Below, in pieces: positions 23,420-61,725 of a DNA stretch of 64,000 bases. The notes beneath the pieces were generated by a model, which searched no databases, had not been told where the DNA came from, and was given only the letters and a program-made list of their open reading frames with translations. Every line of letters starts with the position of its first letter. Within the stretch, counting starts at the first letter, position 1. Both the position numbers and the translations under genes were made by a program. The stretch spans positions 115,568,001-115,632,000 of the forward strand of contig NC_043001.1 of assembly GCF_006345805.1 (NCBI RefSeq), given 5' to 3'. Source of the stretch: Octopus sinensis. Taxonomy: Eukaryota.

Positions 23420-23521
23420 AAAAGCAAGAAATACCTATGGAAATAATTATTGGTTGCACTGTCGGAATTGTATTATTATTAATAATAATGGGTCTTACTT
23501 ATATATTCTACAAAAGAGGAG
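23420..23521 (+). CDS. Transmembrane exon
   Basis: Acceptor atcttttcag|AA. (K)KQEIPMEIIIGCTVGIVLLLIIMGLTYIFYKRG is a ~23 aa hydrophobic stretch followed by a basic KR stop-transfer. Phase-1 donor GGAG|gtttgt (alternative TT|gtatgt 4 nt downstream is phase 2). Confidence 0.9.
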
Positions 23522-23949
23522 GTTTGTATGTTTTTCATATTATAAAGCTTTATTTATCACAACAATGTGTGTATGTGTGTGTGTGTGTGTGTGCACGTGT
23601 ATACATGTGTGTATATATATATATATTTAGAGGGAAAGTAAGAAGAAAAATAAGCAAAAATGCACATTAGAAATCAAAAAAAGTAAAGGCTTTTTATGGA
23701 AAGTAACGATAGATATATACAATCAGATGAACTGAGGTAGGAATAAAAGTAATAAAAGCCATTATTGTGAATTGTTAAAGAGATTCAAAAGCATATGGGT
23801 TTTGTGAATTTACTAATCATTGCTTTGAATGCAAATCAATTAATGAACGGTGTCAGGTCTATTAGTCACTGAGTAAAACGGTTATGTGTATGGGAGGTAA
23901 GTAGTTCTAGATTTGGTGCAATTAGGGTAGATATAGAGCTGAAATGTAA

Positions 23950-24240
23950 ATGGTGTATGGGATGTATGGGGGTTAGTGGTATTAATTGAAAGGTTAGTAG
24001 TGTTCTGTATTACGTTAGCTGTTCATATTGAGGTGTGGAAGATATTTATTGATGAAAGTTGCCTCTTCATGCATTCTTTGTTGTACTGAGGTGTTCTGTG
24101 AACATTGAGGGAAGGGGAAAATTAGGAAATTGGGATTAAGATTCCTAGCACACCTTTCTATATGTTCACCAACCTGTATCTGTGTGTATTGTGGGTGGCG
24201 GATAATGAATAAGGAGAATTTTACTCCATATATGGTATGT
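23950..24240 (-). mobile_element. Penelope-like element GIY-YIG C-terminal fragment
   Basis: Minus frame HIERCARNLNPNFLIFPFPQC...RMHEEATFINKYLPHLN resembles the PLE endonuclease C-terminus. Confidence 0.5.
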
Positions 24241-25150
24241 TGAATGATTCATTTGAACAACATTCTTACCATATATGCTAGATTCATCGAATTCGACAAA
24301 ATCATAACTATTGGCATAAACCCACTAAGAAATTCAATATAAATAAACAGGCAATAAAAAACTCTTCAGGAAAATGGGAAACCATATGGTTTATCCTGCC
24401 CTTCTCTCTTCAAATTAGAAACTTCCCCAGCTTATTTTTTAAAATCTTAGCAAAAACCTTTCCACAAAACCATAAGTATTATTCTATATTTAATAAATCT
24501 TGTATAAAGATATTGTACTCCACTACACCAAATCTAGGGTCAGTTATAGCAGCTAATAATAGATATAAGCTTAGAAACCATTCATTAGGTAAAATTTCTC
24601 TATGGGAAACCTCTGATCTGGAGCCCAACAATAATATTTTACTTAATGATAATACAAGAAGAAATATAATTGGTGAATCACAACAACAAGGGGCTATAAA
24701 TCCTACCCAGTCAAGTCAAATGGATGTGATTAATGAACTAAACACAGCTTCTCAGTAATTTGGAATCTAACCAAATCAATGCAAATTATTTGGGACAATG
24801 ATTTAAAACCCAAATGAGGCAAAAAGCATGCGACTTCTGCAAGCCTGAATACTGCCCCTTATTTAACAAAAGAACCTAGTCTATAAATGCCAAGTACTAA
24901 CATCTAACCCTAACCAATCTAAAACATATATCGGGAGCACAACCGATTTTAAAACTAGATACTGAGTGCACATGAGTTCATTTATTAACCCTAAAACTAA
25001 ATTTTCCTCATCACTAGTAACATATGTTAACCTTCTAAAAAGGCAAAATATTAACTATAAATTAATATGATCAGTAGTTACTGGAACCTCTCCTTATAAT
25101 TCCTGTACACTAACTTGTAGGTTATGTACAAAAGAATCAATCAATATACT
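24240..25150 (+). mobile_element. Degenerate Penelope-like element (RT thumb + GIY-YIG)
   Basis: IWFILPFSLQIR..FPQNHKYYSIFN..STTPNL and VYKCQV..TYIGST..TRY align with the 50532-52292 element. Confidence 0.75.
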
Positions 25151-26375
25151 ATGTCTAAATAAGAAGATAATGCTAAGCAAATTCTCCAATCTTATCACTT
25201 CATGTAGACATAAATACCTCTCCACATATAAATAACAAATAATTGTTAAATAACAAAAAATCCATAAAGAGTTTCTCATCAATAAAATAGTTATGGAATA
25301 ATGATCATCTTATGCACATTTAAATTCTTTCATTAAGTAACAATAAATCTCTAATGAATAAAAAACAAAAAAAATGAAAAGAGAGAAAAATCATTTCACT
25401 TCTAGAATAATTTCCGGGAAACTTATATATTTAATTTTACCTCCACCATATATTTTAAATTCATCTTAATTATTTTATTTCTATTAAACTCATTTTTCAT
25501 CCAATCGATTTTATATAAAATACAAACTGGTATAGTGTAATTGAACTTTGACATTTATGAACAAAAATAGCAGATGTGATCCATACAAGATATAGATATC
25601 CCTGATGAAGGAAATATGGATACTGGAATGGATTTTAAATCGATATCTACTCTTATCACTATGTTCCTGAAACAGCCATGGGATGTATATGTTAATTTTC
25701 ACATTTGGATTTTAATTTGGACTTCTTCCTTCGAACTTTCCATATATTCTTGGAGCTTTAATATTAGCGTCTCTGATGCAACAAACCAATCCTGTATGTA
25801 CAAATTTACGTGATTTAAATATCGCTGAATATGTATTGCCTCAATGTGTATATTTGCCTTTCATATAAAAATATCTATTTTACATATATTTTTTTATGAA
25901 GCATTTAATGGATTGAAATTTTACTTTTCATATATGGACTGATAACCCAGAACTTTGTATCAAATCCAAAATCTTCCATAGTATATTAGGTCAAGGAAAA
26001 AGTTTGTGCACTGTATTAAATATATACACATTTTAAAATATATTTTTGTGGTGTGTGTGTTCATTCAGTTCATTATTTTAACATGGCGCACAGACTTTTT
26101 CTTCAACCTAGTGTGTATGTATATACATACATACAGACAGTTAGACATGCAGACAGACAGATAAGAATAAAATGGGATTAAAAAGTCCTGGCAGGTATCA
26201 AGTAAGCACTCAGTATAAAAGAATAAGGTTAAATTTCCAACAATCAGATACCAGTAAATGTAAATAGAATATAAATCCCAGTTAAATCCTCATGCATGAC
26301 AGGTAAATCCAACAATCCTTTTGTAATAAGAAGTAAAGGTGTGATCTAAAATAAAGATAGGACTTTCTTCATATA

Positions 26376-26409
<34 letters not shown>

Positions 26410-26419
<10 letters not shown>

Positions 26420-26800
26420 TGAGAATGTGTATCTGTCTGTCTGTCTGTGTGAATCCCTGAAACTTGAGAACTACACAATAAATTTCATTCAAATTTTACA
26501 CATGCCTTACTTGGGGTCCAGGGAGTGTCATGGGCAAAAAATGTCTAACTTCTTGCCTAGGGCGAACCCACAGCAATATCATATCTTCTCCACTATTTCA
26601 GTATTACATGTTAAAAGTGAAACAAAAACATCTCTCTATTATAATGTCAGATACTTTCACTTTAATACTGAAACTATTAAAGTCAAACTATTATATAAGA
26701 GGGATGAACCATTAACAGTGGACATCCATTTTGCTAGAAGAAGATCTGCTATGGTCTTATATGCAACACCACTGGTTTTCAATTCATATTAATCAGATTA
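26410..26800 (+). mobile_element. Non-autonomous (Helitron/HINE-like) element; second copy inverted at ~47960-48163
   Basis: actgagaatgtg(t)ctgtctg..aaacttgagaactacac..tttcattcaaatt..catgccttactt..catatcttctccactatttcagtatta occurs reverse-complemented at 47960-48163. Family assignment is inference. Confidence 0.55.
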
Positions 26801-27410: not shown

Positions 27411-27513
27411 AAAATAAAAAAAACCTACTAGGCAGTATCTCATATTTTGGTTTGCCCACACAATTTATCTTTGTGTGTGTGCGTGTATATATATACATAC
27501 ATACATATATATA

Positions 27514-27539
<26 letters not shown>

Positions 27540-27546
<7 letters not shown>

Positions 27547-28043: not shown

Positions 28044-30405
28044 ACTCTTTTCTCTTTTACTCTTTTACTTGTTTCAGCCATCCGGCTGAGGCCATGCTGG
28101 GGCACCGCCCTTGTTGCTACCCTCTCTAAGTCCAGTTTGCCGTGGCTGGCCACTGATCTAGGAGAGAGTTTGTAGCTGCTGCCCTTAGGTTACCTTCGTA
28201 CCTTGCAGTGGGTTCATCTGGGATCCCGGAAAGCAGCTTGTCTAGATGTTTTTTGAAAATGTCCACATCCCATCATGTAGATTCGTTCCATGACCTTACT
28301 TATGTGTGACGTCAGGGAGACTGGCCTGTAGTTTTTGGCCTCTGCTCTACTCCCTCCTTTGGGATAGGGCATATGGTGCCTTCTTTTAGCGCCCTGGGCA
28401 GTTTACCGTTAGCCAAGGAACCACTGAAGAGCTTCTTCAGTGGTCCCGCTAGGGCATGCCTGCATGTTTGTAGGAGGACTGCTGGGAATCCATCTGGTCC
28501 AGCAGCTGAGTTTATTCTCATTTCTTCTATGGCAGATATTACATCCCTCTCTGTTATTTCTATGTGGTCGATGGTTGTTTGTTGGTTTTGGAGTGTTGTG
28601 GCATCAAAGAAAACTTCTGGGTTTGTGATTTGCATGTGCCCCAGAGGGGATGTGAACACACTTTTATACTGTTCCTTTAGTATTTCACTTATCCCTTGGG
28701 GGTCCTCAGTTAGAGAGCCCTTTTTATCAAAGAGTGGGCCATCTTGCAGTGTACCGAGGTGCTTTCTTTCGCAAATTTAAAGAAGGCTTTAGGGTTTGTT
28801 TTAATATTCTCTATGGCCCTGGCTTCTCTCTCTGCCCTCTCCTTCTCATAGGAAAGTTTGAGTGCAGTTTCCGTTTCAAAAAAGTTTCAGGTGGAGACCC
28901 TCATTGTTTCTCTGCCGTGCATTCAGTTGCTTCGAGTAGCAAACTTATGGCATATGTTCTGTATTGTTGTCATGAAATGTTGGAAATGTGTGTTGGTGTC
29001 TTGTGTGGTGATGAAGTCACTCCAGTCATGTTTCGGATCTCTTCGTTTATCTTCTTCCAGTTTGCCTTATGGAAGTTTAGACTGGATAGACCTGTGGTAT
29101 TTTCTAATGGCTGCGTCTCAACTAACTCTCTCATACCATATATCATTACCTCTACTAAGTTGTGATCTGAGAGAATTGTTGGTGTTACCATTATGTTGTG
29201 GATGAGCATCAGGTTGCTTGTGAAACAGAGGTCCAAGACATTCTCACCTCTTGTTGGCCGAAGCACTGCTTGTTCCATGAAAAACTTGCGTGTGAGAGCC
29301 AACAAGGACTCTGTCTGTCTCTGTTCAAGTGATGTCATTCCAGGGAGAAGATGGCCATCTGGCCATTTGACTTTCGGAAGGTTAAAATCTCCCAGCAGTA
29401 GAATGGTGTTACCTTGGTCCAGTTTGTCCAGGACTTCTTCTATTCTTCTGAGGCTATCTTCAAACACTCCTTCATGACTAGGGGTGTCTGGTGGCCGATA
29501 TGTGACACATATTACTATTTTCGGTTGTTTCATGTGTACTATCAGTGTGTCACAGACTGAGTTTGAGTGTGTCAACAGTACTATGGGTGTGACTCTTCAC
29601 GGACGTACAGGGCAACCCCACCATGAGTTCTTTCCTTCCTGTCTGACCGAAAAACAGTATACTTTGGTACGTGTATTTCTGCATCTGCTATACTGCTTGA
29701 CAGGTGCGTTTCAGTCAGCGCTATGCATATTGCATGGTTGCTTGTGCTTAAGTCCCTAAGGTAAGGAATTTTACTCATATTAGTGGGTTTCACCAGACCT
29801 CTGACATTCAGCAGAAGCACTGGTGAGATATTTGGGGTGTCAATAAAGGCTGACGGTGTGGCACCTGGGCTGGTGTCAGCGGTGGCCACCCTGGGTCCCT
29901 TGATTGTGGTGGTCTTGAGTGCTGTTGTGAGTGCCCCTGGCTCTGAAGACGATGTATCCAGGCCAGTTGTCCCACAATTTTCTCTGCTATTTCCACAAAA
30001 TTTCTTTGTTCTGCTGCTGCCGTCTGCATTTCCTCTGCAAATGTGCGCCTCTCCTTGTTGGGGCATTACGCACTATGTCTGCATATTTCTGGGGCAGCTT
30101 GTATTTGTTTTGGTTTTGGTTTCGGTCTTGGTTTTGGTTAAGGCATTTTGGTCGAATGGGTTTGATGCAATTTCCATAGGGCCTGGGATGAGCGAACCTG
30201 CATCCTTCTCCTGTTTCTCCATGCCAGCAGGTTCCATTCCGGAAGAATTTGCATGTTATCTGGGTTTTCTTGTCCCCAGTTCCTCTCTGTTTTCTCTTCC
30301 TCCGTTGGACGGTTGTCCACTGGTTCCTTCTGCATATATATATTTTATATGTATATGGATTTCGTAGAGCACTACTCTGTGTCTCATATTTTGTTTTGCC
30401 CACTC
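28044..30405 (-). mobile_element. CR1/L2-group LINE with N-terminal CCCH finger + APE endonuclease, RT internally deleted
   Basis: CKFFRNGTCWHGETGEGCRFAH; LNVRGL, LTETHL, GGVALY, YRPP, LGDFN, LDLCF, SDHN; AAGPDG, NYRPVSLTSHISKVMERI then jumps to the C-terminal DIFKKHLDKLLSGIPDEP...RAAATNSLLDQ. Confidence 0.88.
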
Positions 30406-30428: not shown

Positions 30429-30463
<35 letters not shown>

Positions 30464-36246: not shown

Positions 36247-36264
36247 GTTTTAATGCAATAAAGA
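36247..36264 (+). CDS. 18-nt cytoplasmic microexon (G)FNAIK
   Basis: tttttattttttttag|GTTTTAATGCAATAAAGA|gtaagt; phase 1-1, in frame with flanking exons. Confidence 0.7.
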
Positions 36265-37600: not shown

Positions 37601-37929
37601 TTGTGAGGACATGGTGAAAATGCATACAATGCAGAGCCAACTCTTTACTTTTTCAGCCCCAGCAGACTACCATGCCCAATTTGTGGAAGAGCCTTCTGAG
37701 CATGCATCAGACTGAATGGCCACAACCAAACACTGTGATCCATCTTCTAGTCTCACGAGATACCCTTGGTCATTGTCAACAATGGTGGATTAGTTGTATA
37801 TGTATATCATCATCATCATCATCACCATCTCAGTTGTGGTTGAAGATTGGACATCTGGTCATTGGTGTCTGACATTAAAAGAAAAGACAATTTCATTCAC
37901 AATCCTCAGAGGTGTAAATAATCGTATTT

Positions 37930-38531: not shown

Positions 38532-38549
38532 GACTTACATCAGCAAAAG
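38532..38549 (+). CDS. 18-nt cytoplasmic microexon (R)LTSAK
   Basis: Long T-rich tract then aatag|GACTTACATCAGCAAAAG|gtaagt; phase 1-1, in frame. Confidence 0.7.
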
Positions 38550-47563: not shown

Positions 47564-48173
47564 AATTTCAAGCAGATATCCCCACCTACTCTGCCTCCCG
47601 TGCAACCTGGATAGATTTTCATTCCAAACATCAGTTATATGCATTATATGAACTTCATGCATAAAAAAACACATGACCTCATAAACTTATGCTGTGCTCC
47701 TCTCACAGATATATATGGGTCTCACACATATCCATGACATTACAAGTTATATACAAACTTATGAACCCATAACACCATAAGTATCACATGAATTATGTGA
47801 AAGATATGTGAAACCTCACAATAATGAGTACACACCCAAACAGACATACTACAGATCCAGAGTTCGCACCCGCTGACAGCTGCAGCGAAATTCATTTTTG
47901 GACTTTCTTCTATCGAAGGCATTCTAACAAAAATGCTTCCGTATAAATGGTGAAATTATTGTCAGTTTTTGTTTCACTTTTAACACGTAATACTGAAATA
48001 GTGGAGAAGATATGATATTGCTATGGGCTCGCCTTAAACAAGAAGTCGAACGTTTTTTTGATCATGAAAGTACATGGACTCTAAGTAAGGCATGTGTGAA
48101 ATTTGAATGAAATTGGTTGTGTAGTTCTCAAGTTTTAGGGAAACACACAGACAGACACATTCTTTTCTTAAAG

Positions 48174-48215
48174 GTACTGAAGATAATTATGTGACTATTT
48201 CAGATGAAGCTCTCA
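48174..48215 (+). CDS. 42-nt tyrosine-motif exon A1 (G)TEDNYVTISDEAL
   Basis: tcttttcttaaag|GTACTGAAG...GCTCTCA|gtaagt; paralog of 49933-49974. Confidence 0.8.
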
Positions 48216-48375
48216 GTAAGTATAATTAACACCAAATAACAAATAATTTTGTATTGGTTTCAATGTTTGGCACAAGGCCAGCAATTTTTTGGGAGGGAGA
48301 AATCAATTTCATCAACCCCATTGCTCAATTTGTACTTACTTTTTGTGTGTGTGTGTGTGTGTATATATGTATATG

Positions 48376-48405
<30 letters not shown>

Positions 48406-48406
<1 letters not shown>

Positions 48407-49238
48407 CATCATCATCATCATGGCACCAGGCCCAGTCTGATCTGGCAATGTTTCTAAAGCTGGATGCCCTTCCTAACGCCTACCACTCCATGAGTGTAGT
48501 GGGTGATTTTTACGTGCCACCAGCACAGGTGCCAGACGAGGCTGGCAAACGGCCACAAGTGGATGGTGCTTTTTACGTGCCACCGGCATGGAAGCCAGTC
48601 AGGGTGACGCTGGGAACGGCCACGTTCGGATGGTTCTCTTATGTGCCACTGGCACTGGTATCACAGCTACAATTTCCATTGATGTTGATCGATTTTGATT
48701 TTTGATTTTGATTTTGATTTTGATTTTCACTTGCCTCTACAGGTCTTCACGAGTAAAGTTTTGTGTCCCAAGAAGGAAAGGTATGCATAAGTGGACTGAG
48801 GCCATGGGTTATGGTCTCACTTGTCCTGCCGGGTCTTCTCACGCACCGCATACTTCCAGAGGTCTCGGTCTCTAGTCATTTCCTCAGTGAGACCTAAAAT
48901 TCGAAGGTCATGCTTCACCACCTCATCCCAGGTTTTCCTGGGTCTACCTCTTCCACAGGTTCCCTCAACAGCTAGGGTGTGGCACTTTTTCACACAACTA
49001 TCTTCATCCATTCTCACCTCATAACCATACCAGCGCAAACGTCTCTCTTGCACACCACAACTGATGCTTCTTAGGTCCAACTTTTCTCTCAAGGTACTTA
49101 CACTCTGTTGGGTATAAACACTGACATTACACATCCATCGGAGCATACTGGCTTCATTTCTTGCGAGCTTACGCATATCCTCAGCAGTCACGGCCCATGT
49201 TTCACTGCCATGTAGCATGGCTGTTCGTACACATGCAT

Positions 49239-49243
<5 letters not shown>
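48406..49243 (-). mobile_element. Young 5'-truncated RTE LINE inserted in (TA)n
   Basis: Open minus ORF YDACVRTAMLHGSETW...GRGRPRKTWDE, close to 12700-13640; (CAT)n tail. Confidence 0.93.
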
Positions 49244-49283
<40 letters not shown>

Positions 49284-49287
<4 letters not shown>

Positions 49288-49630
49288 GAGGTGCAATAGC
49301 CCAGTGGTTAGGGCAGCATACTTGCAGTCATGGGATTGCAGTTTCAATTCCCAGATCAGGCTTTATGAGTGTTTATTGAATGAAAACACCTAAAGCTCCA
49401 TTAGGCTCCAGCAGGGGGGGAGGGGCAACCCTGCTGTACTCTTTCAACACAACTTTCTCTCACTCTTACTTCCTGTTTCTGTCACACTGAATCTCCCCGA
49501 GAACTACATTAAGGGTACACATGTCTGTGGAGTGCTCAGCAGCCTCTTGCACGTTAATTTCATGAGCCAGCTGTTCCATTGATCAGATCAGCTGGAACCC
49601 TCGTTGTTGTAACTGACAGAGTACCACCAC
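49284..49630 (+). mobile_element. tRNA-derived SINE (deleted duplicate at 53307-53458)
   Basis: tagcccagtggttagggc A-box-like, gtttcaattccc B-box-like; the copy at 53307 lacks ~190 bp of the interior. Confidence 0.7.
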
Positions 49631-49802
49631 CATATATATATATACATATATATATATTATATATATACGCACACAATTTGACCAAAAGTCACCCAAAAGT
49701 AAATCAAATTTCCATAAATACTATCTGTAATTCTGTATTGGCTCAAATGGAAAAATGTGTCTCTCAAGAAGGACTTCATGTGTGTGTGTGCATGTATATG
49801 TG

Positions 49803-49863
<61 letters not shown>

Positions 49864-49932
49864 TTAATTTTAGATACCATGCACTACACACTGAAATAAT
49901 AAGTTTTGCATTTTCCATTTCTTTTCTTCAAG

Positions 49933-49974
49933 GTACTGAAGATAATTATGCAACTATTCCAGATGAAGCTCTCA
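49933..49974 (+). CDS. 42-nt tyrosine-motif exon A2 (S)TEDNYATIPDEAL
   Basis: ccatttcttttcttcaag|GTACTGAAG...GCTCTCA|gtaagt; phase 1-1. Confidence 0.85.
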
Positions 49975-50186
49975 GTAAGTATAATTAACACCAAATGACA
50001 AATAATTTTGCATTGGTTTCAATGTTTGGCACAAGGCCAGCAATTTTTTAGGAGGTAGAAATCAATTTCATCAACCCCATTGCTCAATCTGTACTTACTT
50101 TATGTGTATGTGTGTATATATGTATATATATATATATATAACCCATGCTAGCATGGAGAACGGACGTTAAACGACGATGATGATAT

Positions 50187-50221
<35 letters not shown>

Positions 50222-50271
50222 ATTGAAGAAATGGAGTTGAACGAAGATTGAACAGAAATCGTTTTATTGCA

Positions 50272-50351
50272 TTCTACACGTGTTTCGAAAGGCACAATTT
50301 ACCAAATTCCGATTGAATAATGAGACCATATTGTGTCTTTCTCTTCAGGAA
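50272..50351 (-). ncRNA. Mirror copy of the hammerhead ribozyme in the inverted arm
   Basis: Reverse complement of 52968-53047. Confidence 0.7.
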
Positions 50352-50531
50352 GAAATAGGAAATCCGTTGGAAAAAACAAAAACAGAACAGAGGCGGAGCA
50401 AAACAAATCGAACAAGGCTCCTAAGAGCCCATGGCCAAACTGTTTATCAATGTATGTTGAAAACGGGTGGTGGGTGCGTTGAAGATTTTAACGGGTCAGG
50501 CAGCGGTCATTCCGGTGGGTGAGGGCACGGG

Positions 50532-52292
50532 GTGCCTATGGGTAGTTCGGATAGTGCACAGATAGCCGATTTGGTCGGAATATATATTCTCTACGAATTG
50601 TCCGACCAATTCCCGGAGATCGCGGGCGGCCTGTATCGTGACGATTGTCTGTTTTACCTGCAAAACACCACGAACAGAATAGTGCAGAAAACTAAGAGCA
50701 GGTTAGCTAGGTTTTTTAATAGAATGGGCATGAATATAGTTTTTGATAATGAACTCACCAAGGCTAATTTCCTAGACGTTACACTTAACCTTAATAGCGA
50801 CTCATACTGCCCTTACCATAAGCCTTCCACTAATTTGAAGTATGTCAGTGTCTTCTCCAATCATGCCAAAACCGTAACAGACAATTTGGTTAAAAACATC
50901 TCTCTAAGATTGTCTGGCTTGTCCGCTAGTGCCGATATTTTTATGCAGAAAGCGGAATTTTATAACGCCGCACTATCCAAGGCCGGTTATAGGCAGAAGG
51001 TAATTTATATTGATCCGGCCCTTCCGATGCCATCATTCGGTCATCAGGATAGGGCCGTCTATAATAACATAAACAATTTAAGTAGTGACGGGAGCGCGGC
51101 GGGTGCTGGGGCAGTCGCTCTCGCATTTAATTTAGCGAACAAGGATAATTATCGGTCCGGGGGATCTCACACTAACCCAAAACCCGTTATTCATCCGAGA
51201 ATCACCCACCCGAATGCGAGAGCTGGCGTCCCGACCCACCACATAAATAGGAATAAGCATATATGGTTTGTAATTCCCTTTGGTAAGCAGATTAGAACTA
51301 ACCTCCCCCTCATGTTTCGACAAGCCATCGCCAATAACTTCCCCAGAAATTCCAAATATTACTCCACGGTTAACTCGCATAAAGTTAGGATAGCTTTCTC
51401 CAACACTAAAAACCTCGCCTAGATAATCGCCTCCCATAATAATAGGCTGCTTACTAAGACCCTATCACCTTTTTCCGGAGGCACAGCTTCTTCCGCTCCC
51501 GGTTTAATGCTCAGTAGGAATAATAATAGTAGCAATAATGATATGAGAGCCAGTACAGTGACTCATAATCTCAGCTCCAACCAGGGATTATATGCTAGGG
51601 GTATAGTTATAAATAAGGGTGTTGTCATTGACGGTAGCAATGGCAGTAGTGAGGTGAGCGCAGCTCGGCTCGTTAGGGTAGAGAGTCCCAATAGCAACTC
51701 CAGCATCGTTTCCGGCAATAGCAGCACCACGGGCACTAGCAATGACAGCACTCTGATTGATAGTGTAGAATCAGGGGTTATTCCGTTAGTTAATAGTGAC
51801 GTAGTGGAAAATAAAGTAGTAAGCGGCTGCAGTTCTCGCAACAAATATAGTGACAGTAACACAGTTCTAATTTCAGAAACTAATCCTAACAGAATAAGGT
51901 TCACGTCGGTGAACTCCAAGATCAGAAACGCCGTCTACCAATGCAAGGTTTACACGGACTCAGATGTCTACGCTTATGTCGGGGCCTCATCGTCAAGATT
52001 GGCCTTACGAATCTCCAACCATTACGCAACTTTTCGAGACGTGAATAAACGCCAGACCACGGGACTTAGCAAGCTAATATGGCGATTGAAGAATACGAAC
52101 TCAAGCTACAGGCTGGAATGGTCAATTTTGTCGGTGGCCCTCCCATTTGACAGGGGCAGAAGGAAGTGCAACCTTTGTGTCTCCGAACTCTTCCATATAT
52201 TGTTCGCCAGAGACCGGATGGTAAACGGACTTTTACAGTCGGCTTTTCGATGCCCCCATTGGCGGCGTTATACTTATCTTGCTTATAAATAA
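50532..52292 (+). pseudogene. Penelope-like RT (from PMGS motif) + GIY-YIG endonuclease, one in-frame stop at 51420-51422
   Basis: PMGSSDS, GLYRDDC, FLDV, YHKP, SNHAK; then AVYQCKV..YVGAS..RISNH..LSKLIWRLK..WSIL..CNLC..E. ORFs 50532-51422 and 51507-52292 share a frame. Confidence 0.9.
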
Positions 52293-52967
52293 CGCTTATA
52301 AATAATACCTGCACCCGGTTACACTACTTATATGAAAATAGCCCTTGGTAATAAAGTCTGAAAAAGCTTTTAAGAGAAATATGATTAACCATTGCAAGGG
52401 GAATTACTCCTGGGAGACGAATGGTGTTTTGTTTTTGACGACGGGGGGTTTCTTTGACAAGGCATGATTAGACGAACACACGCACACATAAAATATTTTT
52501 CTGCCGCCCGACGGATTTTACAGCAGTGACCATTGTGTAGAGCTGTTTACCAACTGACGGCCGCGCGATCAAACGCACACACGTACACATAAAATATTTT
52601 CTACCCCCTGACGGATTTCTCCGCAGTGACCAGAGTGTAGCGCTTCTTACCAACTTGCGGCCGCACATATATAGAACAGTACACACACACATGTTTCTAA
52701 GTAGATTTTGTCTCGCCCCATATAATACACCTAATATTCTTTAAATAGTCAGAACTTTAGTCTCGGTCACAAAGAACATCTACGCACCCCGTGCCCTCAC
52801 CCACCGGAATGACCGCTGCCTGACCCGTTAAAATCTTCAACGCACCCACCACCCGTTTTCAACATACATTGATAAACAGTTTGGCCATGGGCTCTTAGGA
52901 GCCTTGTTCGATTTGTTTTGCTCCGCCTCTGTTCTGTTTTTGTTTTTTCCAACGGATTTCCTATTTC

Positions 52968-53047
52968 TTCCTGAAGAGAAAGACACAATATGGTCTCATT
53001 ATTCAATCGGAATTTGGTAAATTGTGCCTTTCGAAACACGTGTAGAA
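52968..53047 (+). ncRNA. Minimal type I hammerhead ribozyme in PLE pseudo-LTR
   Basis: Stem I TTC/GAA; core CTGAAGA (52971-52977); stem II GAAAGACACAAT/ATTGTGCCTTTC (11 of 12 pairs); GAAA (53033-53036); stem III AC-ACGT-GT with palindromic loop; cleavage triplet GTA (53042-53044). Confidence 0.75.
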
Positions 53048-53258
53048 TGCAATAAAACGATTTCTGTTCAATCTTCGTTCAACTCCATTTCTTCAATTCA
53101 CTAATAATATTAAAATTCAATTATCCGCACCAACGCACGGTTGCAACACCATATGGTTGTACCTCCAACCGTGCTGTCTTCTGCTGTGATTTTTGCTACC
53201 AAGGTATCGGTTAAACTTTTGATTAATCTGCAACAAGATTATTCATCTTTCTATTTCA

Positions 53259-53307
<49 letters not shown>

Positions 53308-53709
53308 GTGGAGGCACAATAGCCCAGTTGTTAGGGCAGCATACTTGCAGTCACGTCTGTGGAGTGCTCAGCCACTTGCACGTTAATTTCATGAGCCAGC
53401 GGTTCCATTAATCAGATCAAATGGAACCCTCGTTGTCGTAACTGACAGAGTACTACCACCATATATATATACAGTTTGATGAAAAGTTACCCAACAGCAA
53501 ATCAAATTTCCATAAATACTCTCTGCTGTAATTCTGTATTGACTCAAATGGAAAAATGTGTCACTCAAGAAGGACTTCAGTTTGAACAATTTCCATGATG
53601 TTTTACATTTAGTTGCTTTTATTAAACCCATTCAGTTGTTAAACATAAGTAAATCTTGGAATTAAATGGTTTTGATTTGCTGTCCGGTGATTTTGGCCAG
53701 CCCTTAACG

Positions 53710-54150
53710 CATTGGGCTGAGGAATAATTCATAGGTCTTTTCTTCACATTTAACAATGTGCACGGAAATAAAATACATTGGCAAAACGTTTTATGTTATT
53801 TGAGAGAAATTTCTGCTCAACAAGATGAATTTTGATTTTTTAAATTTTATTGATTTTTGTGCATTTTCAGATCATTAAAATGCACTTTCAAGAGGAAAAA
53901 AACTTAGCATTTTCCACACCATTTGCTTTTTCATTTAATCAATTTGTTAATCCTGCCAAAGCTGCTTTTGAGATTTGTCCTGTGTATTGAGAAGGAGCAA
54001 TTTCTCAAACTACTACCCACCATTGGTTTTTGAGCTTCAAAAATGGGAATTTTGACCTCAAGGATGGATTACACAGCAGTCAACCAATTCAGTTCAATGA
54101 AGAGTGATTGAATCATCTTCATCACAAAAATTCACATAAATATGAACTTA
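53710..54150 (+). mobile_element. Mariner 5' fragment (N-terminal HTH)
   Basis: AKAAFEICPVY*EGAISQTTTHHWFLSFKNGNFDLKD...PIQFNEE, homologous to the 9610-10853 transposase. Confidence 0.7.
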
Positions 54151-54183
54151 CTGTGCTTTGAAACACATCTTATATATATATAT

Positions 54184-54236
<53 letters not shown>

Positions 54237-55744
54237 CTTTATTTAAAGCAGCAGAATATTCAACAAAATCTGTTACTCATTGGAGGCATCTACATCATTT
54301 TGACAGCCTCCAGAGAAGCATACATACACATGCGCACACACACACACACACACACACATATACATATATATATACACACACACACATTCGTGCTGTATAC
54401 TTGACCTCCACTCTCATATCTTCTTCCATTCTGTATTTATAGTGATGATACTTCAGAATCAGGGATGCTGGTGTGTAAGGTTGTAAGAGTTTGGGAGAAA
54501 AGGAGGTGAATACAAACCATGGAATGAAACAGGTCAAATGAACATAGGAGTTTTAATAAATCATGAACAGGGAAAGGATTTACGTATAGAAGGGGACACA
54601 GTAAGAAAAAGGAATAGATGCTGACTGGAAATAGTACAAAGGAAAGGAAGTGGCAACTCACAGTACAGAGATGGCAATATGTATGGTATAAATGTATGGT
54701 GTATTCTATTTTTGTCTCTTACAGCAGCAGCATAGCACTTTCGACAGGAGAATGATGGAGGGCTCATTATAGGGTCATGAGTTGTGGGGCTGGCAGTTGT
54801 GATTAGTGGGGAAATTAAGAAAGGGATACCAATTTGAAGGGTGGAGGATCATTTGTGGTAGGAACATGGAATGGATGTCTGTTGGAAGTGGCAGCAGATG
54901 TAAGATGTGGTGAGTAGTGGAAAAAGGGAAAATCAATAACAACAGTGGAGGTTAGCTCATTGATGGTAAGGATAAAGGAAAAATGTCAATAGGAGGTGAA
55001 CCATACTTAGGAGTGGTTTTTAATGGCAGGAAGAGGAAATGTGAAGAAGAGAAAGATGCAGTTTAGAAGAGCTGATTTAGTTCGGTTTCTTGGGGTAGCA
55101 TGTGTGAAAACATTGTTGCATATAAAATATACACTATCTATATAATAATTTGCTTCTTTCTTCACCTGTTATACTTTAGTTTGATAGAGAGGTGGAAATG
55201 GAATGAGTGAGAGGTTGAGTAAGAATGAGAGAAAGAGGGAGAAATGTGGGTAGAGAAGCAAGAAGAAGAGAGGAGTATAATAATACACTAAGGTCAAATG
55301 CATCACGTAGTTAGTTGAAGGGGGAGGCAAAGAGCAAGACACAAATACGATGAGAGGAAAGTGGGAGAGAGAGAGAAGTGTTAATGACATACTGTAGGGT
55401 GGAAAGAGAAAGAGGGAAATGTTAAAGACATGAAGATGGGAATTACATGGTTAAAATGTTTGTTGAAGAGGTAGAGAGAAAGAGAGAAATATAAGGTGCT
55501 TAGCAGAAGGAAATTTCAAAATCATATACTATTTTGCAACTGGAAGTGAAATCACTTAGCAAAATACAAATAACAATCATCCTTTCTTTCTTAAATAGCT
55601 TTGCTTAATCTCTTTCGTTCTGTGGAATTTCCACAGATCTCACTAGTATTTTATTTTTTTTAGTTACTTTTTGTACAATATCAAAATATTAAAACTATCC
55701 TCTCCAAACAATAAATGTGCACATCTTTCTATAATTTTTTGAAG

Positions 55745-55804
55745 CTAATGAAGAGCAATATGCTGAAGCTAGTGGGCCCAGTTATTTAGAATTGAAACCA
55801 GCAG
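55745..55804 (+). CDS. 60-nt tyrosine-motif exon B1 (T)NEEQYAEASGPSYLELKPA
   Basis: ataattttttgaag|CTAATGAAG...CCAGCAG|gtaagt; phase 1-1. Confidence 0.85.
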
Positions 55805-56024
55805 GTAAGTATAAACAATATTGTTAGTACACAGCATGATCTTAGAAATTATCTTAAACATTAACAGAAAGCTAACAGTCATGAAATGTATCATTCTCTA
55901 ACTTTTATCTATTAATATGTGTGTATGAGTGTGTTTGAGTCTGTCTCATTAGCATTTATTATTGTAGTATCAACACAATACTAACATAACGCTATTTATT
56001 GTTTTTATTTCTAATTTTTTAAAG

Positions 56025-56066
56025 ACATGAAGATTTCTTACGTTAATGTTTCAAGGAAACCTGATG
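56025..56066 (+). CDS. 42-nt tyrosine-motif exon C1 (D)MKISYVNVSRKPD
   Basis: ctaattttttaaag|ACATGAAG...CCTGATG|gtaagt; phase 1-1. ISYVNV fits the ITIM consensus. Confidence 0.85.
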
Positions 56067-56162
56067 GTAAGTATATAAGCAATCGAATAATAAAATTTCA
56101 TTCATTAGAGCAAGAGTTAGCACAATTTTGGTTCACTCTTTCTTTGAGTAGTATAGGCAGCT

Positions 56163-56525
56163 TAATGCATGTCTTTCATTTGTTCCAGTCATTGGACTGC
56201 AGCCATGCTAAGGCACCACTTTCAAGGGTTCAGTCCAACAAATCCACCCGAGTACTTATTATTTTTAAGCCTTTTACTTATTCTATTGGTTTCTTTTGCT
56301 AAACTGCTAAGTTCTGTGGATGTGAACAAACCAACACAAGTGTCAAGTGGTGATGGGATCAAACGCAAAGGCACACACACTCCCTTATATATATACCAAA
56401 TCCATTCACAAGATTTTGGTCAGCCCAGGATTATAGCAGAATACACTCGCCCAATGTGCCTCATCATATGACGAAACCCAGACCCATTTGTTTGGAAATT
56501 AAACTTCTTACCTCACAGCCACACC
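56163..56525 (-). mobile_element. tRNA-derived SINE, in copy 1 of the duplication only
   Basis: Reverse complement begins aggtgtggctgtgaggtaagaag. The 3' tail resembles the CR1/L2-group LINE tail. Confidence 0.75.
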
Positions 56526-57533
56526 TAAAAACCTTTCAAAATATTAAAATTCCATTGCATATACGATAAACTTCTTACAGATATTCCTATTTAACTCTGA
56601 TATTTTACCTTTTTATCAATCCTTACCCTTAATGATGTAGTTCATAAAAATTTATTTTGTAAGCTTAATTTGTACAAAAAAATCCAAATAATTAAGTAAT
56701 AATGAATTCAGTAGATATTTGCCAAGGCATGAGACACAATGAATGGGAATAAATTTGCAATAGTAAATGTGATTAACTGTTCTCCTCCAGTATCCAAAAT
56801 CACTCCTGTTTATTTATAACTCTAGCAAGAAATTTATCTTAGAAAAACCCTTATTGCTCTAAACATATTTGTGAATAGCTTCCCTTAATGTTAATATCAG
56901 AACCAAATATTGAATTGATGGAAATAGTACATACTGTACTAAATATTGACAATTAAATTAGTGTTAGTACATTCTGAGATTATATCCTAGAGAAGTACAC
57001 TTTGTACAATCAGCCTCTCAATAAGTTCTACTTTTACAAAATCATTAGCACACTCAGCATCCAAACTCTATCTACTAATCCCTACAGAACACTGAAGAGA
57101 TGGAGGATATTGTGGCCTCTTGGCAGAAACGGCCGTAAGGAACTGATATTTTATGTTTTACTTGTATATATTTGTGTAGCACACAGTCTTTGAATGTGTA
57201 TGTATTTTTATAATACTCCCTTTTGTTTTGGAATAGATAGACTTAATAGAATGCCTACTGGCTGATCTATGTAATTTTTGTATCCCCTCCATTTTCTTTT
57301 TGCCGGATATATATATATCATTCCCCATGATAGATCGCTAGCCACTGAACCTTTCTCTATTTTCTCTCCCTCTTTTTATATTCGTCCCTGTTTATTTCTG
57401 TGTTCCTTTCTGTCAAAGAGCGTCGGCTTGAAACATAAAAGACTTTCTCACTTCCCGAGCGTTAAACTAATACATCTGTTTGTTGTTTACACACCCATCC
57501 TCGTCTTTTGTTTTGTTTTGTTTTTGTAAATTC

Positions 57534-57586
<53 letters not shown>

Positions 57587-57719
57587 GAGTGGAAAATTTA
57601 CAGGTAAGTGTGTTAAATAATAAGGCAATAAAAGAGAATGACTCTCCCCAGACACCACAAAATATGCTTCAACACACAAACTCATATAAAGAATTTTGCA
57701 AACCAAATACAAAAATGAA

Positions 57720-58052
57720 GAATAGAAATGGCTTTTCTGATAATTTTTCCACTTCAATAATTAGATGTTTATAAGTTTACAAACAGGTAACACCTGAATT
57801 CAGTTAGTCAACTAAAGCATGGGTGAGGGCAGTTGTTGAGGCCATTGCTTCTGCTTTCCTTTTTTCTTGAAGGTCCTTCCACAGCAACAGGCCAGTAAAG
57901 AACTTTAGAAAAGGAAAGCAGAAGCGATGGCCTCAGCAACTGCCCTCACCCATGCTTTGGGTAACTATTTGAATTCAAGAGTTACCTTTTTCTAAACTTA
58001 TAAACACCTAATTATTAAAGTGGAAAATTATCAGAAAAGCCATTTCTATTCA
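57720..58052. mobile_element. Palindromic foldback/MITE (~150-bp arms, ~35-bp loop); right-truncated second copy at 59443-59725
   Basis: gaatagaaatggcttttctgataatttttccact ... agtggaaaattatcagaaaagccattttctattc; inner gcatgggtgagggcagttg / caactgccctcacccatgc. Confidence 0.85.
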
Positions 58053-58197
58053 GTTTTTCAGATATCTAATACTGTACCAAGGGCTTTCTATTTCTTTTTC
58101 TACTATCTACATATAGCTGCTACTTTCTGTGTATCATCAAAATATTTAAATCACACCCTCCAAACAATAAATATGCCTTTCATTTTATTTCTTGATG

Positions 58198-58257
58198 CTG
58201 TGGAAGAACAATGTGCTGAGGTTAGCGAGCCGAAATATTTAGAAATGGGACAACGAA
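58198..58257 (+). CDS. 60-nt exon B2 (A)VEEQCAEVSEPKYLEMGQR; paralogous acceptor mutated (possible pseudo-exon, or shifted acceptor at 58207)
   Basis: Aligns to B1 and keeps donor CGAA|gtaagt, but the acceptor reads gatg|CT instead of gaag|CT. An in-frame AG at 58205-58206 would give a 51-nt exon. Confidence 0.6.
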
Positions 58258-58492
58258 GTAAGTACAATCAATATTGCATGATCTTAGAACCTATCTTTAA
58301 AATAGACAGACAGCTAACTATTATGAAATATGTCACTCTCTAACTTTTGTGTATTTAATATGCATGTATGTATGTGTGAGTGTGTTTGAGTGTATCTCAT
58401 GAGTATTTATTATGGTAGAATCAGTACACAGCTATCTTAATTTAAATATTATTTATAGCCATGCTATTTGTTCTTTTTTTCATTTCTTAAAG

Positions 58493-58534
58493 ACACGGAT
58501 GGTACTTACGTTAAAGTTTCAAAGAAACCTGCTG
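58493..58534 (+). CDS. 42-nt tyrosine-motif exon C2 (N/D)TDGTYVKVSKKPA
   Basis: catttcttaaag|ACACGGAT...CCTGCTG|gtaagt; paralog of C1. Confidence 0.85.
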
Positions 58535-60131
58535 GTAAGTATATAAGCAATTTATTAACAAAAAATTACATTCATTAGAGTAAGATTAGCAAATATCTCA
58601 TTCTTTCTTTGAGTAGAATATGCAGCTTAATATATATGTATGATTGAAATTAAAACTTTGAAAATGTTAAAATTTCATTGCATATGCAATGAACTTCTTG
58701 CAAACATTCATATGTAACTTATATTTTACACCTTTATTTATCTTACTTTTATTAATGCAGTTCATATGCATATATTTTTAAAGTTTTATTTAAACAAATA
58801 ACCCAAATTGGTATACAATTAATATTGAATTCAGTAGATACTTGCCTAGACATGAGACACAAAAATGGAACAGATTTCAAAAGGTAAATGGGATCAGCTT
58901 TTCCCCTTCAGTATCCAAAATAACTCCTGCTTATGGATAACTCTAACAAGAATGTAATCTCAGAAAAACCCTTATTGCTCTAAACATATTTGTGAATGGC
59001 TTCTCTTAATGGTAATATCACCACCAAATATTGAAGTGAGGGAAAAAGTACAAACTGTACTAAATATTGACAGAATTAAATTTAGTGTTAGTACATTCTG
59101 AGATTATATCCCAGTGAAGTAAATTTTGTACATTCAGCCTCTCAATAAGTACTACTTTTACATAATCATTAACACTTTTCTTGTAGAATAGAATTTTGGG
59201 TGCCACTTTACTAAGGAACCCTCTTTCCAAAGTCTAATTTTGAAATGGCATATTAACCAAAATTACTCTTTGTTTACTCTTGTTCATACCAAATAGATTT
59301 ATTAGACAATACTTTTCTTTTATGCAATATGTAAATGAGAGGATGAAGAACATATTCAGTACATGGACTTCGCCTGGATTTAAATATTTTTTGTTTCTAA
59401 ATACATATATGTGTATATATATAATTATATTTGAAGAAAAAAGAATAGAAATGGCTTTTCTGATAATTTTTCCACTTCAATAATTAGATGTTTATAAGTT
59501 TACAAACAGGTAACTCCTGAATTCAGTTAGTCAAACAAGACATGGGTGAGGGCAGTTGTTGAGGCCATTGCTTCTGCCTTCCTTTTTTCTTGAAGGTCCT
59601 TCCACAGCAACAGGCCAGTAAAGAACTTTAGAAAAGGAAAGCAGAAGCGATGGCCTCAGCAACTGCCCTCACCCATGCCTTGGTTGACTATCTGAATTCA
59701 AGAGTTACCTTTTTCTAAACTTATCCACATCAGATCTTGTTTGTTTCATTCATAAAATCTGCATCTCTTAAAAGGAAGTCAAATATCTGAAAATCGGTTA
59801 TATTGATGTAGTTTTACATGCTTATTCCTGTGAAGCCATGTACTTATGGAGAAAAAATTTGATGAAAACTCGAAAAAACTGTGTATTTTTAGCCAATAGT
59901 GAGACAGAAATTTTCTGTGATGTAGCATTCTCAACTTAGTGGTGTCAACTTTAAGGTTTTACCCTGTGAAATTTATAGTTTAGCATCTGTGAAATGACCT
60001 GTTCATTGTAGGTTTCTAAATAAACAGAAATACCTAATGAAGTCAACATCTATCATCTTACTGTTTCTTTTCTCTCTTCATTGATTTCTGTATGTTTTGT
60101 ATATTTTTATTTTTATTTGTTATATTAATAT

Positions 60132-61640
60132 AAGTGAATAATTCCGGGTAGAAGTAGGGGTCCACCAAGGTTCAGCCCCCAGTCCCTTTTATTCATCATA
60201 GTCCTCCAAGCAATAACAGAGGAATTCAAGACGGGTTGCCCCTGGGAGTTCCTCTATACTGATGACCTGGCCCTCATAGCAGAATCACTACCGGAACTAG
60301 AAAAGAAATTTTGGGTGTGGAAGTTAGGTTTAGAATCAAAAGGCCTTATAGTAAATGTAGCGAAGACCAAAGTTATTTAAGTAGGAAGGTGAACTCATCA
60401 CACACACCCTTAAGTAGGTGGCCCCGCTCAATCTGTAGAAAAGGTGTAGGTAGAAACTCTTTAAGATGTACCCAATGTAAGCTATGGACGCATAAGAGGT
60501 GTAGCAACATCAGAGGAAAACTAACTGAGAAGATAGCTTTCATGTGCAGCAGATGCACAGGGGCAATAGACACCACAGATGCTCAGAAAACAGATTCCAT
60601 CACACTCCAGGGGGAGAAATTAGAAGTAGTTGATTGTTTCCACTACCTAGGTGACCAAGTTAGTAGTGTGGGTGGATGCTCAGAGAGTGTCACCACTAGA
60701 ATACGAATAGCCTGGGCAAAGTTTAGAAAGTTTCTACCCCTACTGGTGACAAAGGGTCTCTCGCTCAGAGTGAAAGGTAGATTGTATGACACATGTGTGT
60801 GAACTGCCATGCTTCAAGGTAGTGAAATATGAACTGTGACAGCAGAGGACATGTGTAGGCTTGAAAGAAATGAAGCTAGTATTATCCGCTGGATGTGTAA
60901 TGTCAGTGTGCACAGACGACAGAGTGTAAGTGCTCTGAGAGAAATGCTGGACACAAGAAGCATCAGATGTGGCATGCAAGAAAGATGTTTGCGCTGGTAT
61001 GGTCATGTACTATGGATGGATGAGGAGAGATGAGTGAAGAAGTGCCACTCCCAAACAGTTGAAGGAATCCAGGGTAGAAGTAGACCCAGGAATACATGGG
61101 ATGAGGTGGTCAAGCATGACCTTTGAACATTGGGCCTCACAGAGGCAATGACGAAATACTGAGAACTCTGGAGGTATGCTGTGACTGCGAAGACCTGACA
61201 GATAACGTGAGTTCATGGCTGTTTCCTGCACCAGCTTCACATAGCAGCCCCAACCCATCCAAAGTACCTTCGACTGCAGGACGGCCTGCTGTGCTTACCT
61301 TGGATTGTAGGGTGACCTGCTGTGCTTAAGGAGACCTACTGAGTCAAATACATCAACATCAAAATAAAAATCAAATGGAAATTGTAGTTGTGATACCTGT
61401 GCCTGTGGCACATAAAAAGCACCATCCGAACATGGCCGATGCCAGCGCCACCTTGACTGGGTTCTGTACCGGTGGCATGTAAAAAGAACCCACTACACTC
61501 ACGGAGTGGTTGGCTTTAGGAAGGGCATCCAGCTGTAGAAACACTGCCAGATCAGACTGGAGCCTGGCGTAGCCTCCTGGCTTCCCAGACCCTGGTCGAA
61601 CTGTCCAACCCCGTGCTAGCATCGTTAAATGATGATGATG
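60132..61640 (+). mobile_element. 5'-truncated RTE LINE
   Basis: GVHQGS..FLYTDD, RWPRSICRKGVGRNSLRCTQCKLWTHKRC, YLGD; RTE 3' UTR and (GAT)n tail. Confidence 0.9.
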
Positions 61641-61669
61641 TATGTATGTATGCGTTTGTTTCACATTAG

Positions 61670-61725
61670 TTGTTACAGTTGTACTTTATGAAGCCATTGA
61701 TTTCTACACACAGGAATCAATATAG
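61670..61725 (+). CDS. Probable terminal coding exon (V)VTVVLYEAIDFYTQESI*
   Basis: Acceptor gtttgtttcacattag|TT at 61670 (or in-frame gttacag|TT at 61679), phase 1, ending in TAG 61723-61725. VLYEAI fits the ITIM consensus, in keeping with the upstream Tyr exons. Confidence 0.65.

Follow-up and report, generated by a model that had tools for sequence, protein, structure and literature searches.

Duplicated tyrosine-motif mini-exons encode the cytoplasmic tail of a predicted Octopus receptor family

A receptor gene in a duplicated locus

The subject of this study is a stretch of 64,000 nucleotides of the Octopus sinensis genome (C5:115,568,001-115,632,000, + strand; NC_043001.1), called the window below, and the receptor gene that runs through it. 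The middle of this gene and most of its 3′ part were found to fall inside the window. The gene belongs to a family encoding proteins with immunoglobulin (Ig)-like domains and a cytoplasmic tail of short, repeated, tyrosine-containing modules. The exons in the window are 97-100% identical to O. sinensis RefSeq proteins, and RefSeq splits the gene into pieces, one of which is LOC118763568. Since other exons of the family lie upstream of the window at -61, -47.6, -22.8, and -18.7 kb, the gene spans at least 134 kb. An earlier note, written from the letters of the window alone, had described an Ig-superfamily receptor in a cephalopod-like animal. That the gene encodes an Ig-superfamily type I membrane protein of a cephalopod was borne out by matches to the Pfam models I-set, Ig_3, and Ig_2 and by the identity with O. 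sinensis RefSeq proteins. The features are collected in Table 1, where the proteins of the family are given by the numbers used in this study (P0013 and so on).

The window gene forms one of the two arms of an inverted segmental duplication. The other arm (copy 2), at about 108,000-217,000 in window-equivalent coordinates (- strand; C5:115.676-115.785 Mb), lies tail to tail with it at 92-100% identity and contains the Ig exons, the transmembrane (TM) exon, the mini-exons a, b, A0, and A0′, three B+A exon units, and the terminal exon. Further copies or haplotigs with 98-99% identity are found on seven unplaced scaffolds. In O. vulgaris, a chromosome (OX597841.1, L001 below) is collinear with the window from 13.6 to 64 kb at 93-98% identity.

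Table 1. Features of the window, with positions counted from its first nucleotide (nt, nucleotides; TE, transposable element; LINE, long interspersed nuclear element; ORF, open reading frame; RT, reverse transcriptase)
Feature	Position	Strand	Basis or remark
Ig-like exon, family residues ~494-581	3134-3397	+	tblastn with P0013; frame broken here
Mariner HTH_48 domain (intron TE content)	8303-8515	+	
Ig-like exon, phase 1-1, GC donor (gcaagt)	7863-8111	+	71% identical to P0013 residues 576-661
RT-type ORFs and PHD-like finger (intron TE content)	10957-13313	+	
Ig I-set exon, phase 1-1	15578-15886	+	Pfam I-set 5.4e-08; part of XP_036359040.1
TM exon (EIPMEIIIGCTVGIVLLLIIMGLTYIFYKRG), phase 1-1	23420-23521	+	In XP_036359040.1
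LINE endonuclease (intron TE content)	28970-29596	-	
Mini-exon a (GFNAIK), 18 nt	36247-36264	+	TM-to-a junction in XP_036359040.1
LINE 3′ end (intron TE content)	37618-37872	+	
Alternative terminal exon (TPADYHAQFVEEPSEHASD, then stop) in LINE 3′-end fragment	37657-37715	+	RefSeq model of the window (XP_036359040.1)
Mini-exon b (..LTSAK), 18 nt	38532-38549	+	TSSAK after exon a in P0014, P0017, P0021, P0039
A-type 42-nt cassette A0 (GTEDNYVTISDEAL)	48174-48215	+	In P0039, P0014, P0017
A-type 42-nt cassette A0′ (STEDNYATIPDEAL)	49933-49974	+	Counterpart skipped in LOC115229375 X2, X3
Tandem duplication of B+A exon unit, ~2.45-kb period	55665-59175	+	Self-comparison
B-type 60-nt cassette B1 (TNEEQYAEASGPSYLELKPA)	55745-55804	+	In P0003, P0004, P0014, P0017, P0039
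A-type 42-nt cassette A1 (DMKISYVNVSRKPD)	56025-56066	+	Counterpart skipped in LOC115229375 X3
B-type cassette B2 (DAVEEQCAEVSEPKYLEMGQR), 63 nt as in XP_036355409.1	58195-58257	+	60 nt from 58198 in the earlier note
A-type 42-nt cassette A2 (NTDGTYVKVSKKPA)	58493-58534	+	Present in the XP_036355409.1 chain
Terminal exon of the earlier note (VVTVVLYEAIDFYTQESI, then stop)	61670-61725	+	Absent from every model
Candidate alternative last coding exon, ag/AACCCTGA, giving ..KPA-EP and stop	62949-62956	+	Homology with the end of XP_036355409.1

In the protein model of the window, the I-set match is above the curated Pfam cut-off and the Ig_3 and Ig_2 matches are just below theirs; stronger Ig matches were obtained for the full-length relatives P0013 and P0021. 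These two relatives begin with the signal-peptide-like sequence MEFKLLYWKHFLTVQCLCVCLQ, and the start of the window gene falls outside the window. The membrane-proximal Ig exons are 66-78% identical to the paralogs and 97-100% identical to P0001, P0018, and P0039. The TM exon encodes IIIGCTVGIVLLLIIMGLTYIFY-KRG, which was judged by inspection to be a single hydrophobic segment followed by a basic stop-transfer sequence, and its O. vulgaris counterpart is conserved apart from a 3-nt insertion that keeps the frame. The GC-AG donor of the Ig-like exon at 7863-8111 (CAG/gcaagt, window 8112-8117) is kept in copy 2 and in the paralog LOC115212119. As for repeats, a unit of about 100 bp resembling a short interspersed nuclear element (SINE) forms a tandem array at 929-2100 and occurs as single copies at 13357-13649, 48423-48689, and 61395-61622, beside several exons.

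Mini-exons of the tail

Downstream of the TM exon, the earlier note had placed eight internal exons of 18/18/42/42/60/42/60/42 nt. Their positions, GTAAGT donors, 1-1 phase, and divisibility by three were all confirmed, and they extend across a TE-rich intron of 22.3 kb. Are they merely chance ORF and splice-site patterns in a repeat-rich intron? On the + strand, 21 GTAAGT sites were counted, close to what the base composition predicts (a hand estimate), and the pattern AG-N18-GTAAGT alone is expected about once per window. However, exact and near-exact RefSeq models use these mini-exons. Letter for letter, XP_036359040.1 (P0018, LOC118763568) corresponds to window 15578-15886, 23420-23521, 36247-36264, and 37657-37715; thus, the TM exon and the 18-nt exon a are fixed. 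The second model, XP_036355409.1 (P0039, LOC115230134), is encoded on the scaffold C9742, whose DNA is 98-99% identical to the window. Its order is Ig2 - TM - GVKRNKE - TSSAK - GTEDNYVTISDEAL - STENNYATIPDEAL - TNEEQYAEASGPSYLELKPA - DMKISYVNVSRKPD - DAVEEQCAEVSEPKYLEMGQR - NTDGTYVNVSKKPA - EP and stop, and thus matches the internal chain TM-a-b-A0-A0′-B1-A1-B2-A2 of the earlier note. Moreover, mapped paralogs have exons of the same module types, which occur in three Octopus species. For example, the tail of LOC115212119 (XP_036359229.1) was mapped to C5:39.88-39.94 Mb, where exons of 42/42/60x5/42/42/60/56 nt and a terminal exon are spread over 47 kb; all of its module exons have phase 1-1, with acceptors ttcttaaag or ttcttgaag and donors gtaagt or gtgagt. 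These alignments indicate that the eight internal exons are real exons; for them the chance explanation is refuted, and it keeps virtually no probability as an account of the tail. Exons of 17-60 nt scattered over tens of kilobases of repeats are thus recoverable from raw sequence.

The first two mini-exons, a and b, encode the juxtamembrane peptide of the family as a pair: GVKRNKETSSAK, or AVKCKKDISSAK in the 1220-aa protein P0021 (aa, amino acids), and GFNAIKRLTSAK in the window version. The family equivalents of exon a are GVKRNKE/AVKCKKD in P0014, P0021, P0022, and P0039. Exon a is 19 nt long in four of five genomic copies and exon b is 17 nt long in seven of eight, and likewise in O. vulgaris and copy 2. 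The 18+18 nt arrangement is private to the window, and a and b total 36 nt in every copy; the window version is either a compensated -1/+1 frameshift pair or the product of two assembly errors. Since the lengths are 19+17 nt elsewhere, a and b are not individually symmetric and must be used together outside the window. The two symmetric 18-nt exons of the earlier note are therefore real exons with the right coordinates, but their lengths hold for the window copy only, and the proposal that any subset of exons can be skipped without a frameshift fails for this pair in all other copies. A reading of a and b as chance patterns could draw on the expected frequency given above, the 19- and 17-nt lengths elsewhere, and a TT donor in three copies. 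It was rejected because RefSeq models use both exons and full-length relatives show the same peptide.

The cassettes that follow are of two types. Module A (42 nt) has the pattern x-D-x-x-Y-[VA]-N-[VI]-S-K-K-P with the conserved core Y-[VA]-N-[VI]-S-K-K-P, and module B (60 nt) has the pattern E-E-Q-[Y/C/H]-A-E-x-S-E-P-K-Y-[LV]-x-[ML] with the conserved core E-P-K-Y-[LV]-x-M/L. A0 and A0′ sit in a 220-bp local duplication with 92% identity, and B1 is 100% identical in O. vulgaris and copy 2. The B+A unit is repeated (55665-56166 versus 58121-58631, 74% identity; 56528-57051 versus 58652-59175, 83%), and a third unit lies beyond the window at window-equivalent 67742-67801 and 68036-68077, in a duplicated block at 67680-68170. 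As these self-alignments indicate, the array evidently grew by duplication of a B+A unit of about 2.4 kb.

The exon B2 at 58198-58257 is preceded by TG, not AG. Exons of this type have CTTGATG/CT in 12 of 14 genomic copies and CTTGAAG/TT in the other two, including the copy used in LOC115229375. XP_036355409.1 splices into B2 as a 63-nt exon behind TG (window 58193-58197; C9742:87035-87057). In-frame AG acceptors are available at 58117, which gives 141 nt and is the one chosen in an O. vulgaris model, and at 58207, which gives 51 nt; all three versions of the exon are symmetric. If reads support the TG acceptor, a non-canonical 3′ splice site would have spread to 12 of 14 exon copies. The view of B2 as a dead exon was softened, since it is included in XP_036355409.1 and in two O. 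vulgaris models.

Two observations concern the intron around the A0 exons. Window 50207-53110, between A0′ and B1, is a recent insertion bounded by inverted repeats of 332 bp with 99% identity (50207-50538 versus 53110-52781). The ORFs inside it (50523-51419 and 51423-52289) gave no Pfam match, and the insertion is an uncharacterised transposon. In O. vulgaris, about 700 bp of pure (TA)n at L001 37310-38024 lie opposite window 48163-54394 (6.2 kb), and the assembly of the ortholog is without both A0 exons (the GTEDNY exons). This may reflect either a deletion or an assembly collapse, and the number of cassettes may differ between the sister species.

Where does the gene end? The earlier note had closed the tail with an exon at 61670-61725. 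This exon is in no annotated model and adjoins a SINE-like repeat, and its TAG stop codon (61721-61723) is private to the window, being TGG in seven of eight genomic copies, including copy 2, and in O. vulgaris. The segment is probably intronic rather than an exon, and here, and only here, a chance pattern is the best reading; a plausible-looking terminal exon can still be wrong. All nine tyrosine motifs of the earlier note were found by translation of the + strand at the implied places, but YEAI and YTQE lose their support together with the terminal exon, and so does one of the two sites that had been likened to an immunoreceptor tyrosine-based inhibitory motif (ITIM). The window copy has three candidate 3′ ends: two stops that derive from TEs, at 37657 and 62949, and the family ending at 73323. 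The other frame of 37657-37715 reads, by inspection, as a LINE-type zinc knuckle (CPICGRAF), and 62949-62956 lies in a dispersed repeat. The family terminal exon (..[GDS]YQ and stop, or VTSEG.. type) was found at window-equivalent 73323-73385, in the 7-9 kb region past the window end, preceded by a degenerate copy of the 56-nt penultimate exon of the family at about 71.2 kb. Splicing of a phase-1 A exon to the terminal exon at 73323 gives ...GYQ and stop, and the endings of relatives are GYQ (P0017), DYQ (P0021), and SYQ (P0022).

A modular-tail family found in Octopus

Is the modular tail found elsewhere? The known members of the family include LOC115212119, LOC115212116, LOC115229375, LOC115230134, LOC106869178, and LOC106880794. 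The full-length members, P0013 (992 aa, O. bimaculoides), P0010 (887 aa, O. vulgaris), and P0021 (1220 aa, O. sinensis LOC115212116), have a signal-peptide-like start, up to about nine Ig-like domains, one TM segment, and the modular tail. The loci are annotated only as 'uncharacterized' or 'Ig-like domain-containing', and a literature search found no paper on them. Among 1.84 billion representative proteins, only 11 were matched by a hidden Markov model of the tail, and all those with a source name are from Octopus. No Pfam model matches the tail. When the tail alone was searched against the protein database, all matches were gene models of NCBI/UniRef and none was a protein derived from a contig, and no encoding contig was found on record for P0002.

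In the genome, at least 42 B+A units were counted at more than 12 loci, in two clusters on C5 (38.5-40.0 Mb and 115.5-115.8 Mb) and on unplaced scaffolds. The tails have from 5 to more than 20 modules (more than 20 in P0021, by eye); a census of the tails with regular expressions, which undercounts, gave 2 to 12 A-type and 2 to 10 B-type modules. The earlier note had suggested a paralog search as a check on whether tail-exon number varies, and the counts indeed differ widely among paralogs and species. The exon 'NAARANAISSKPN' of LOC115229375 was not found in the window or its flanks. At C7:88897256-88897894 (+), family residues 1-216 (the signal peptide and first domains) are found at 48% identity in one uninterrupted frame, which may be a retrocopy or an intron-poor relative.

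One O. vulgaris fragment of the family carries the automatic name 'synaptogenesis syg-2-like', and nephrin likewise combines a long multi-Ig ectodomain with a tyrosine-rich tail. The family might thus consist of nephrin/SYG-2-like adhesion or recognition molecules of neurons or epithelia, with the tail linked to the actin machinery. The chance of this is slight, however: P0013 and P0021 gave no Pfam match to a fibronectin-III domain, the Nck-type motif YDxV is absent from the tails, no PDB sequence was matched at E ≤ 0.001, and members of the family turned up only in Octopus, while orthologs of nephrin/SYG-2 occur across the bilaterians.

Combinations of cassettes in sister genes

The earlier note had proposed that cassettes are skipped in a combinatorial manner. 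Symmetric phase is not in itself evidence for skipping, because tandem exon duplications that survive must be symmetric. The annotated isoforms are more informative. In LOC115229375, compared with isoform X1, X2 is without the second 42-nt exon, and X3 is without that exon and the DMKISYVNVSRKPD exon. O. bimaculoides LOC106869178 has 15 distinct annotated proteins (RefSeq, two releases; UniProt), which share an identical ectodomain and TM segment, and their 15 tails differ solely in which entire modules, of 14 or 20 aa, are kept or left out. Whether a module begins with V or I depends on its upstream neighbour, as predicted from the codon at a phase-1 junction. The NCBI Gnomon pipeline generally emits extra isoforms only on transcript or RNA-seq support. 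Cassette mixing thus appears to have strong annotation-level support in sister genes, not in the window's own copy, and to this extent the proposal stands.

Tyrosine motifs and a possible docking scaffold

What could such a tail do? The motifs YxN and YxxM are far above the shuffled expectation in P0002, P0013, and P0021, whereas the ITIM is not. The SH2 domain of Grb2 prefers pYxN, and that of p85 prefers pYxxM. I consider it likely that the genes form an Octopus-only family of type I Ig-superfamily receptors, whose tail of duplicated A and B mini-exons serves as a docking scaffold with cassettes chosen per transcript. The tail would be a disordered, multivalent scaffold for phosphotyrosine docking. 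Clustering driven by a ligand would lead to phosphorylation by a Src-type kinase, upon which the YxN sites would recruit an SH2 adaptor of the Grb2/Drk type and the YxxM/L sites a PI3K-p85-type or similar SH2 protein. The exon copy number in evolution and the inclusion of cassettes in each transcript would together set the count and kind of docking sites per receptor.

Alternatively, the protein might be an inhibitory receptor, in which ITIM sites (I/V/L/S-x-Y-x-x-L/V/I) recruit an SHP-type phosphatase and the choice of cassettes tunes inhibition. The earlier note had named two such sites, ISYVNV and VLYEAI. ISYVNV lies in the supported exon A1 and fits the consensus; P0021 has three ITIM matches, and V at Y+3, which is common in A modules, is compatible with SHP-2-type SH2 preferences. 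However, ISYVNV is a private variant of its module, and its fit depends on the -2 residue; in the A modules of the family this residue can be G, N, A, D, I, or V, with the +2 N kept. Moreover, VLYEAI is lost with the exon at 61670-61725, used by no model. The tails have 0-3 ITIMs, not above shuffles, and no immunoreceptor tyrosine-based switch motif was found in the family tails. On these motif patterns, a multivalent Grb2/Drk and p85 docking scaffold is favoured over an inhibitory receptor, which seems unlikely.

Adjacent A modules may offer a further lead, as their YxxI-x10-YxxI arrangement would resemble the extended, Draper-like form (YxxI/L-x6-12-YxxL/I) of an immunoreceptor tyrosine-based activation motif (ITAM). 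The pattern YVTI-x10-YATI has one match versus 0.02-0.03 expected in shuffles, and it needs both A0 and A0′ to be included. The pair is absent from P0002, P0017, P0021, and P0022, and its spacing is wider than the canonical 6-8. In the sister gene LOC115229375, isoform X2 lacks this ITAM-like pair of adjacent A modules.

Several points weigh against the docking-scaffold reading. The evidence for splicing consists of gene models, and among these, P0001, P0003, and P0023 are clearly chimeric or truncated. The sole model of the window gene stops in a TE exon after exon a, and the isoform sets come from sister genes. The motif enrichment over shuffles is inflated by the shared origin of the modules through duplication. 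B modules often have H, C, or D in place of their first tyrosine, and the SH2 partners are assigned from short linear motifs only. To these are added the signs of damage in the window copy: the Ig exon at 3134-3397 has three small indels (-1, -1, +2) and in-frame stops and is intact in copy 2 and P0001 (XP_036656702-type); the B2 and B3 exons are without an AG acceptor; and the Ig2 exon shows 10 nonsynonymous and 4 synonymous differences from O. vulgaris, and 8 and 0 between copy 1 and copy 2. These counts give no clear sign of purifying selection (dN/dS near 1, not clearly below).

Is the window copy then a decaying or non-functional duplicate, whose tail exons are inherited and not maintained? 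Besides the damage just described, the locus is an arm of a recent inverted duplication with several scaffold copies at 98-99% identity, its sole RefSeq model ends in a LINE fragment, and the penultimate exon of the family is degenerate. On the other hand, the remaining exons all have open frames and intact splice sites, the -1/+1 indels of exons a and b compensate each other, and the B exon with the TG acceptor is used in the RefSeq model of a sister copy. The damaged Ig exon is symmetric and can be skipped without loss of frame. The alignments of the introns show single-base indels at the same density, a pattern that errors of long-read assembly in duplicated DNA would be expected to give. 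Copy 2 in turn carries +4/+1 indels in its TM exon; the indels of the Ig exon and the TM exon reflect either reciprocal decay or such assembly errors. Decay of the window copy has a real but minor probability, and the docking-scaffold reading is preferred.

A bolder extension of the docking scaffold, put forward tentatively and rather to be doubted, is that its valency and composition are programmable: duplication would set the repertoire (5 to more than 20 modules), and splicing would pick, in each cell, the numbers of Grb2-type, PI3K-type, and ITAM-like sites that go with a constant ectodomain. If true, no receptor described so far would match it in the scale of its intracellular diversification.

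Comparison with known systems

PECAM-1 is close in plan, being a multi-Ig type I protein with one TM segment whose output is tuned from the intracellular side. When all PDB chain sequences, among which there are PECAM-1 ectodomain entries, were searched by phmmer with P0013, none reached E ≤ 0.001, so no homology to PECAM-1 was found. PECAM-1 has six Ig domains and eight short alternatively spliced cytoplasmic exons, and loss of exon 14, with its tyrosine motif, abolishes SHP-2 binding (PMC5664058). Its exons are unique and do not form a tandem array of two modules, and it has two ITIMs rather than many YxN/YxxM sites. Moreover, PECAM-1 is a single-copy vertebrate gene, whereas the octopus genes form a lineage-specific multigene family. 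The fester/FcoR genes of Botryllus are similar in being invertebrate, lineage-restricted multigene families of type I receptors with tyrosine motifs switched by splicing. In FcoR of Botryllus schlosseri, alternative splicing of the cytoplasmic part switches between an ITIM and a hemITAM (PMC11507803). The Botryllus receptors, however, have other ectodomains and no cassette array, and their switching works via intron retention, new stops, and alleles. The acidic E-D-x-Y-x-x-I of the A0 module merely resembles a hemITAM.

Other receptors share single aspects of the octopus tail. CD22/Siglecs, FCRL, and LILR/PIR have several Ig domains and many tail tyrosines, with motifs often on their own small exons, and their tails mix inhibitory and Grb2-type (YxN) sites. 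They differ in having a fixed set of few unique exons, are not known to have a two-module array or tails of more than 20 modules, and show no detectable homology. Clusters of YxN/YxxM that recruit Grb2 and PI3K p85 are known from the YVHV/YVNV site of Met, YMNM of CD28, LAT, and nephrin, where valency controls signal strength, and they offer a lead on the mechanism only; these tails are not known to be made of duplicated cassette exons or to vary their number of sites by splicing. Dscam1 is likewise an Ig-superfamily receptor diversified by alternative exon use. It has mutually exclusive clusters of ectodomain exons that diversify recognition, in contrast to LOC106869178, whose ectodomain is constant in 15 isoforms and in which only the tail cassettes vary; Dscam1 also has two alternatively spliced cytoplasmic exons. 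Discussions of splicing-based receptor diversity usually centre on the side that binds the ligand (Dscam, neurexins, protocadherin promoters). In the octopus family, the signalling side is variable and the ectodomain is constant.

To call this tail 'unlike anything known' would be overstated, since PECAM-1 (PMC5664058) and FcoR (PMC11507803) already switch signalling motifs by splicing. What is new is the presence of two interchangeable types of repeated module in tandem, in an array whose length differs by paralog and species, giving many combinations on a constant ectodomain and confined to Octopus. Little has been learned so far about the immune receptors of cephalopods. If transcripts confirm the isoforms, the family would be a candidate for lineage-specific recognition in these animals, be it immune or neural, and a natural system in which the number and order of SH2 docking sites can be related to signal strength.

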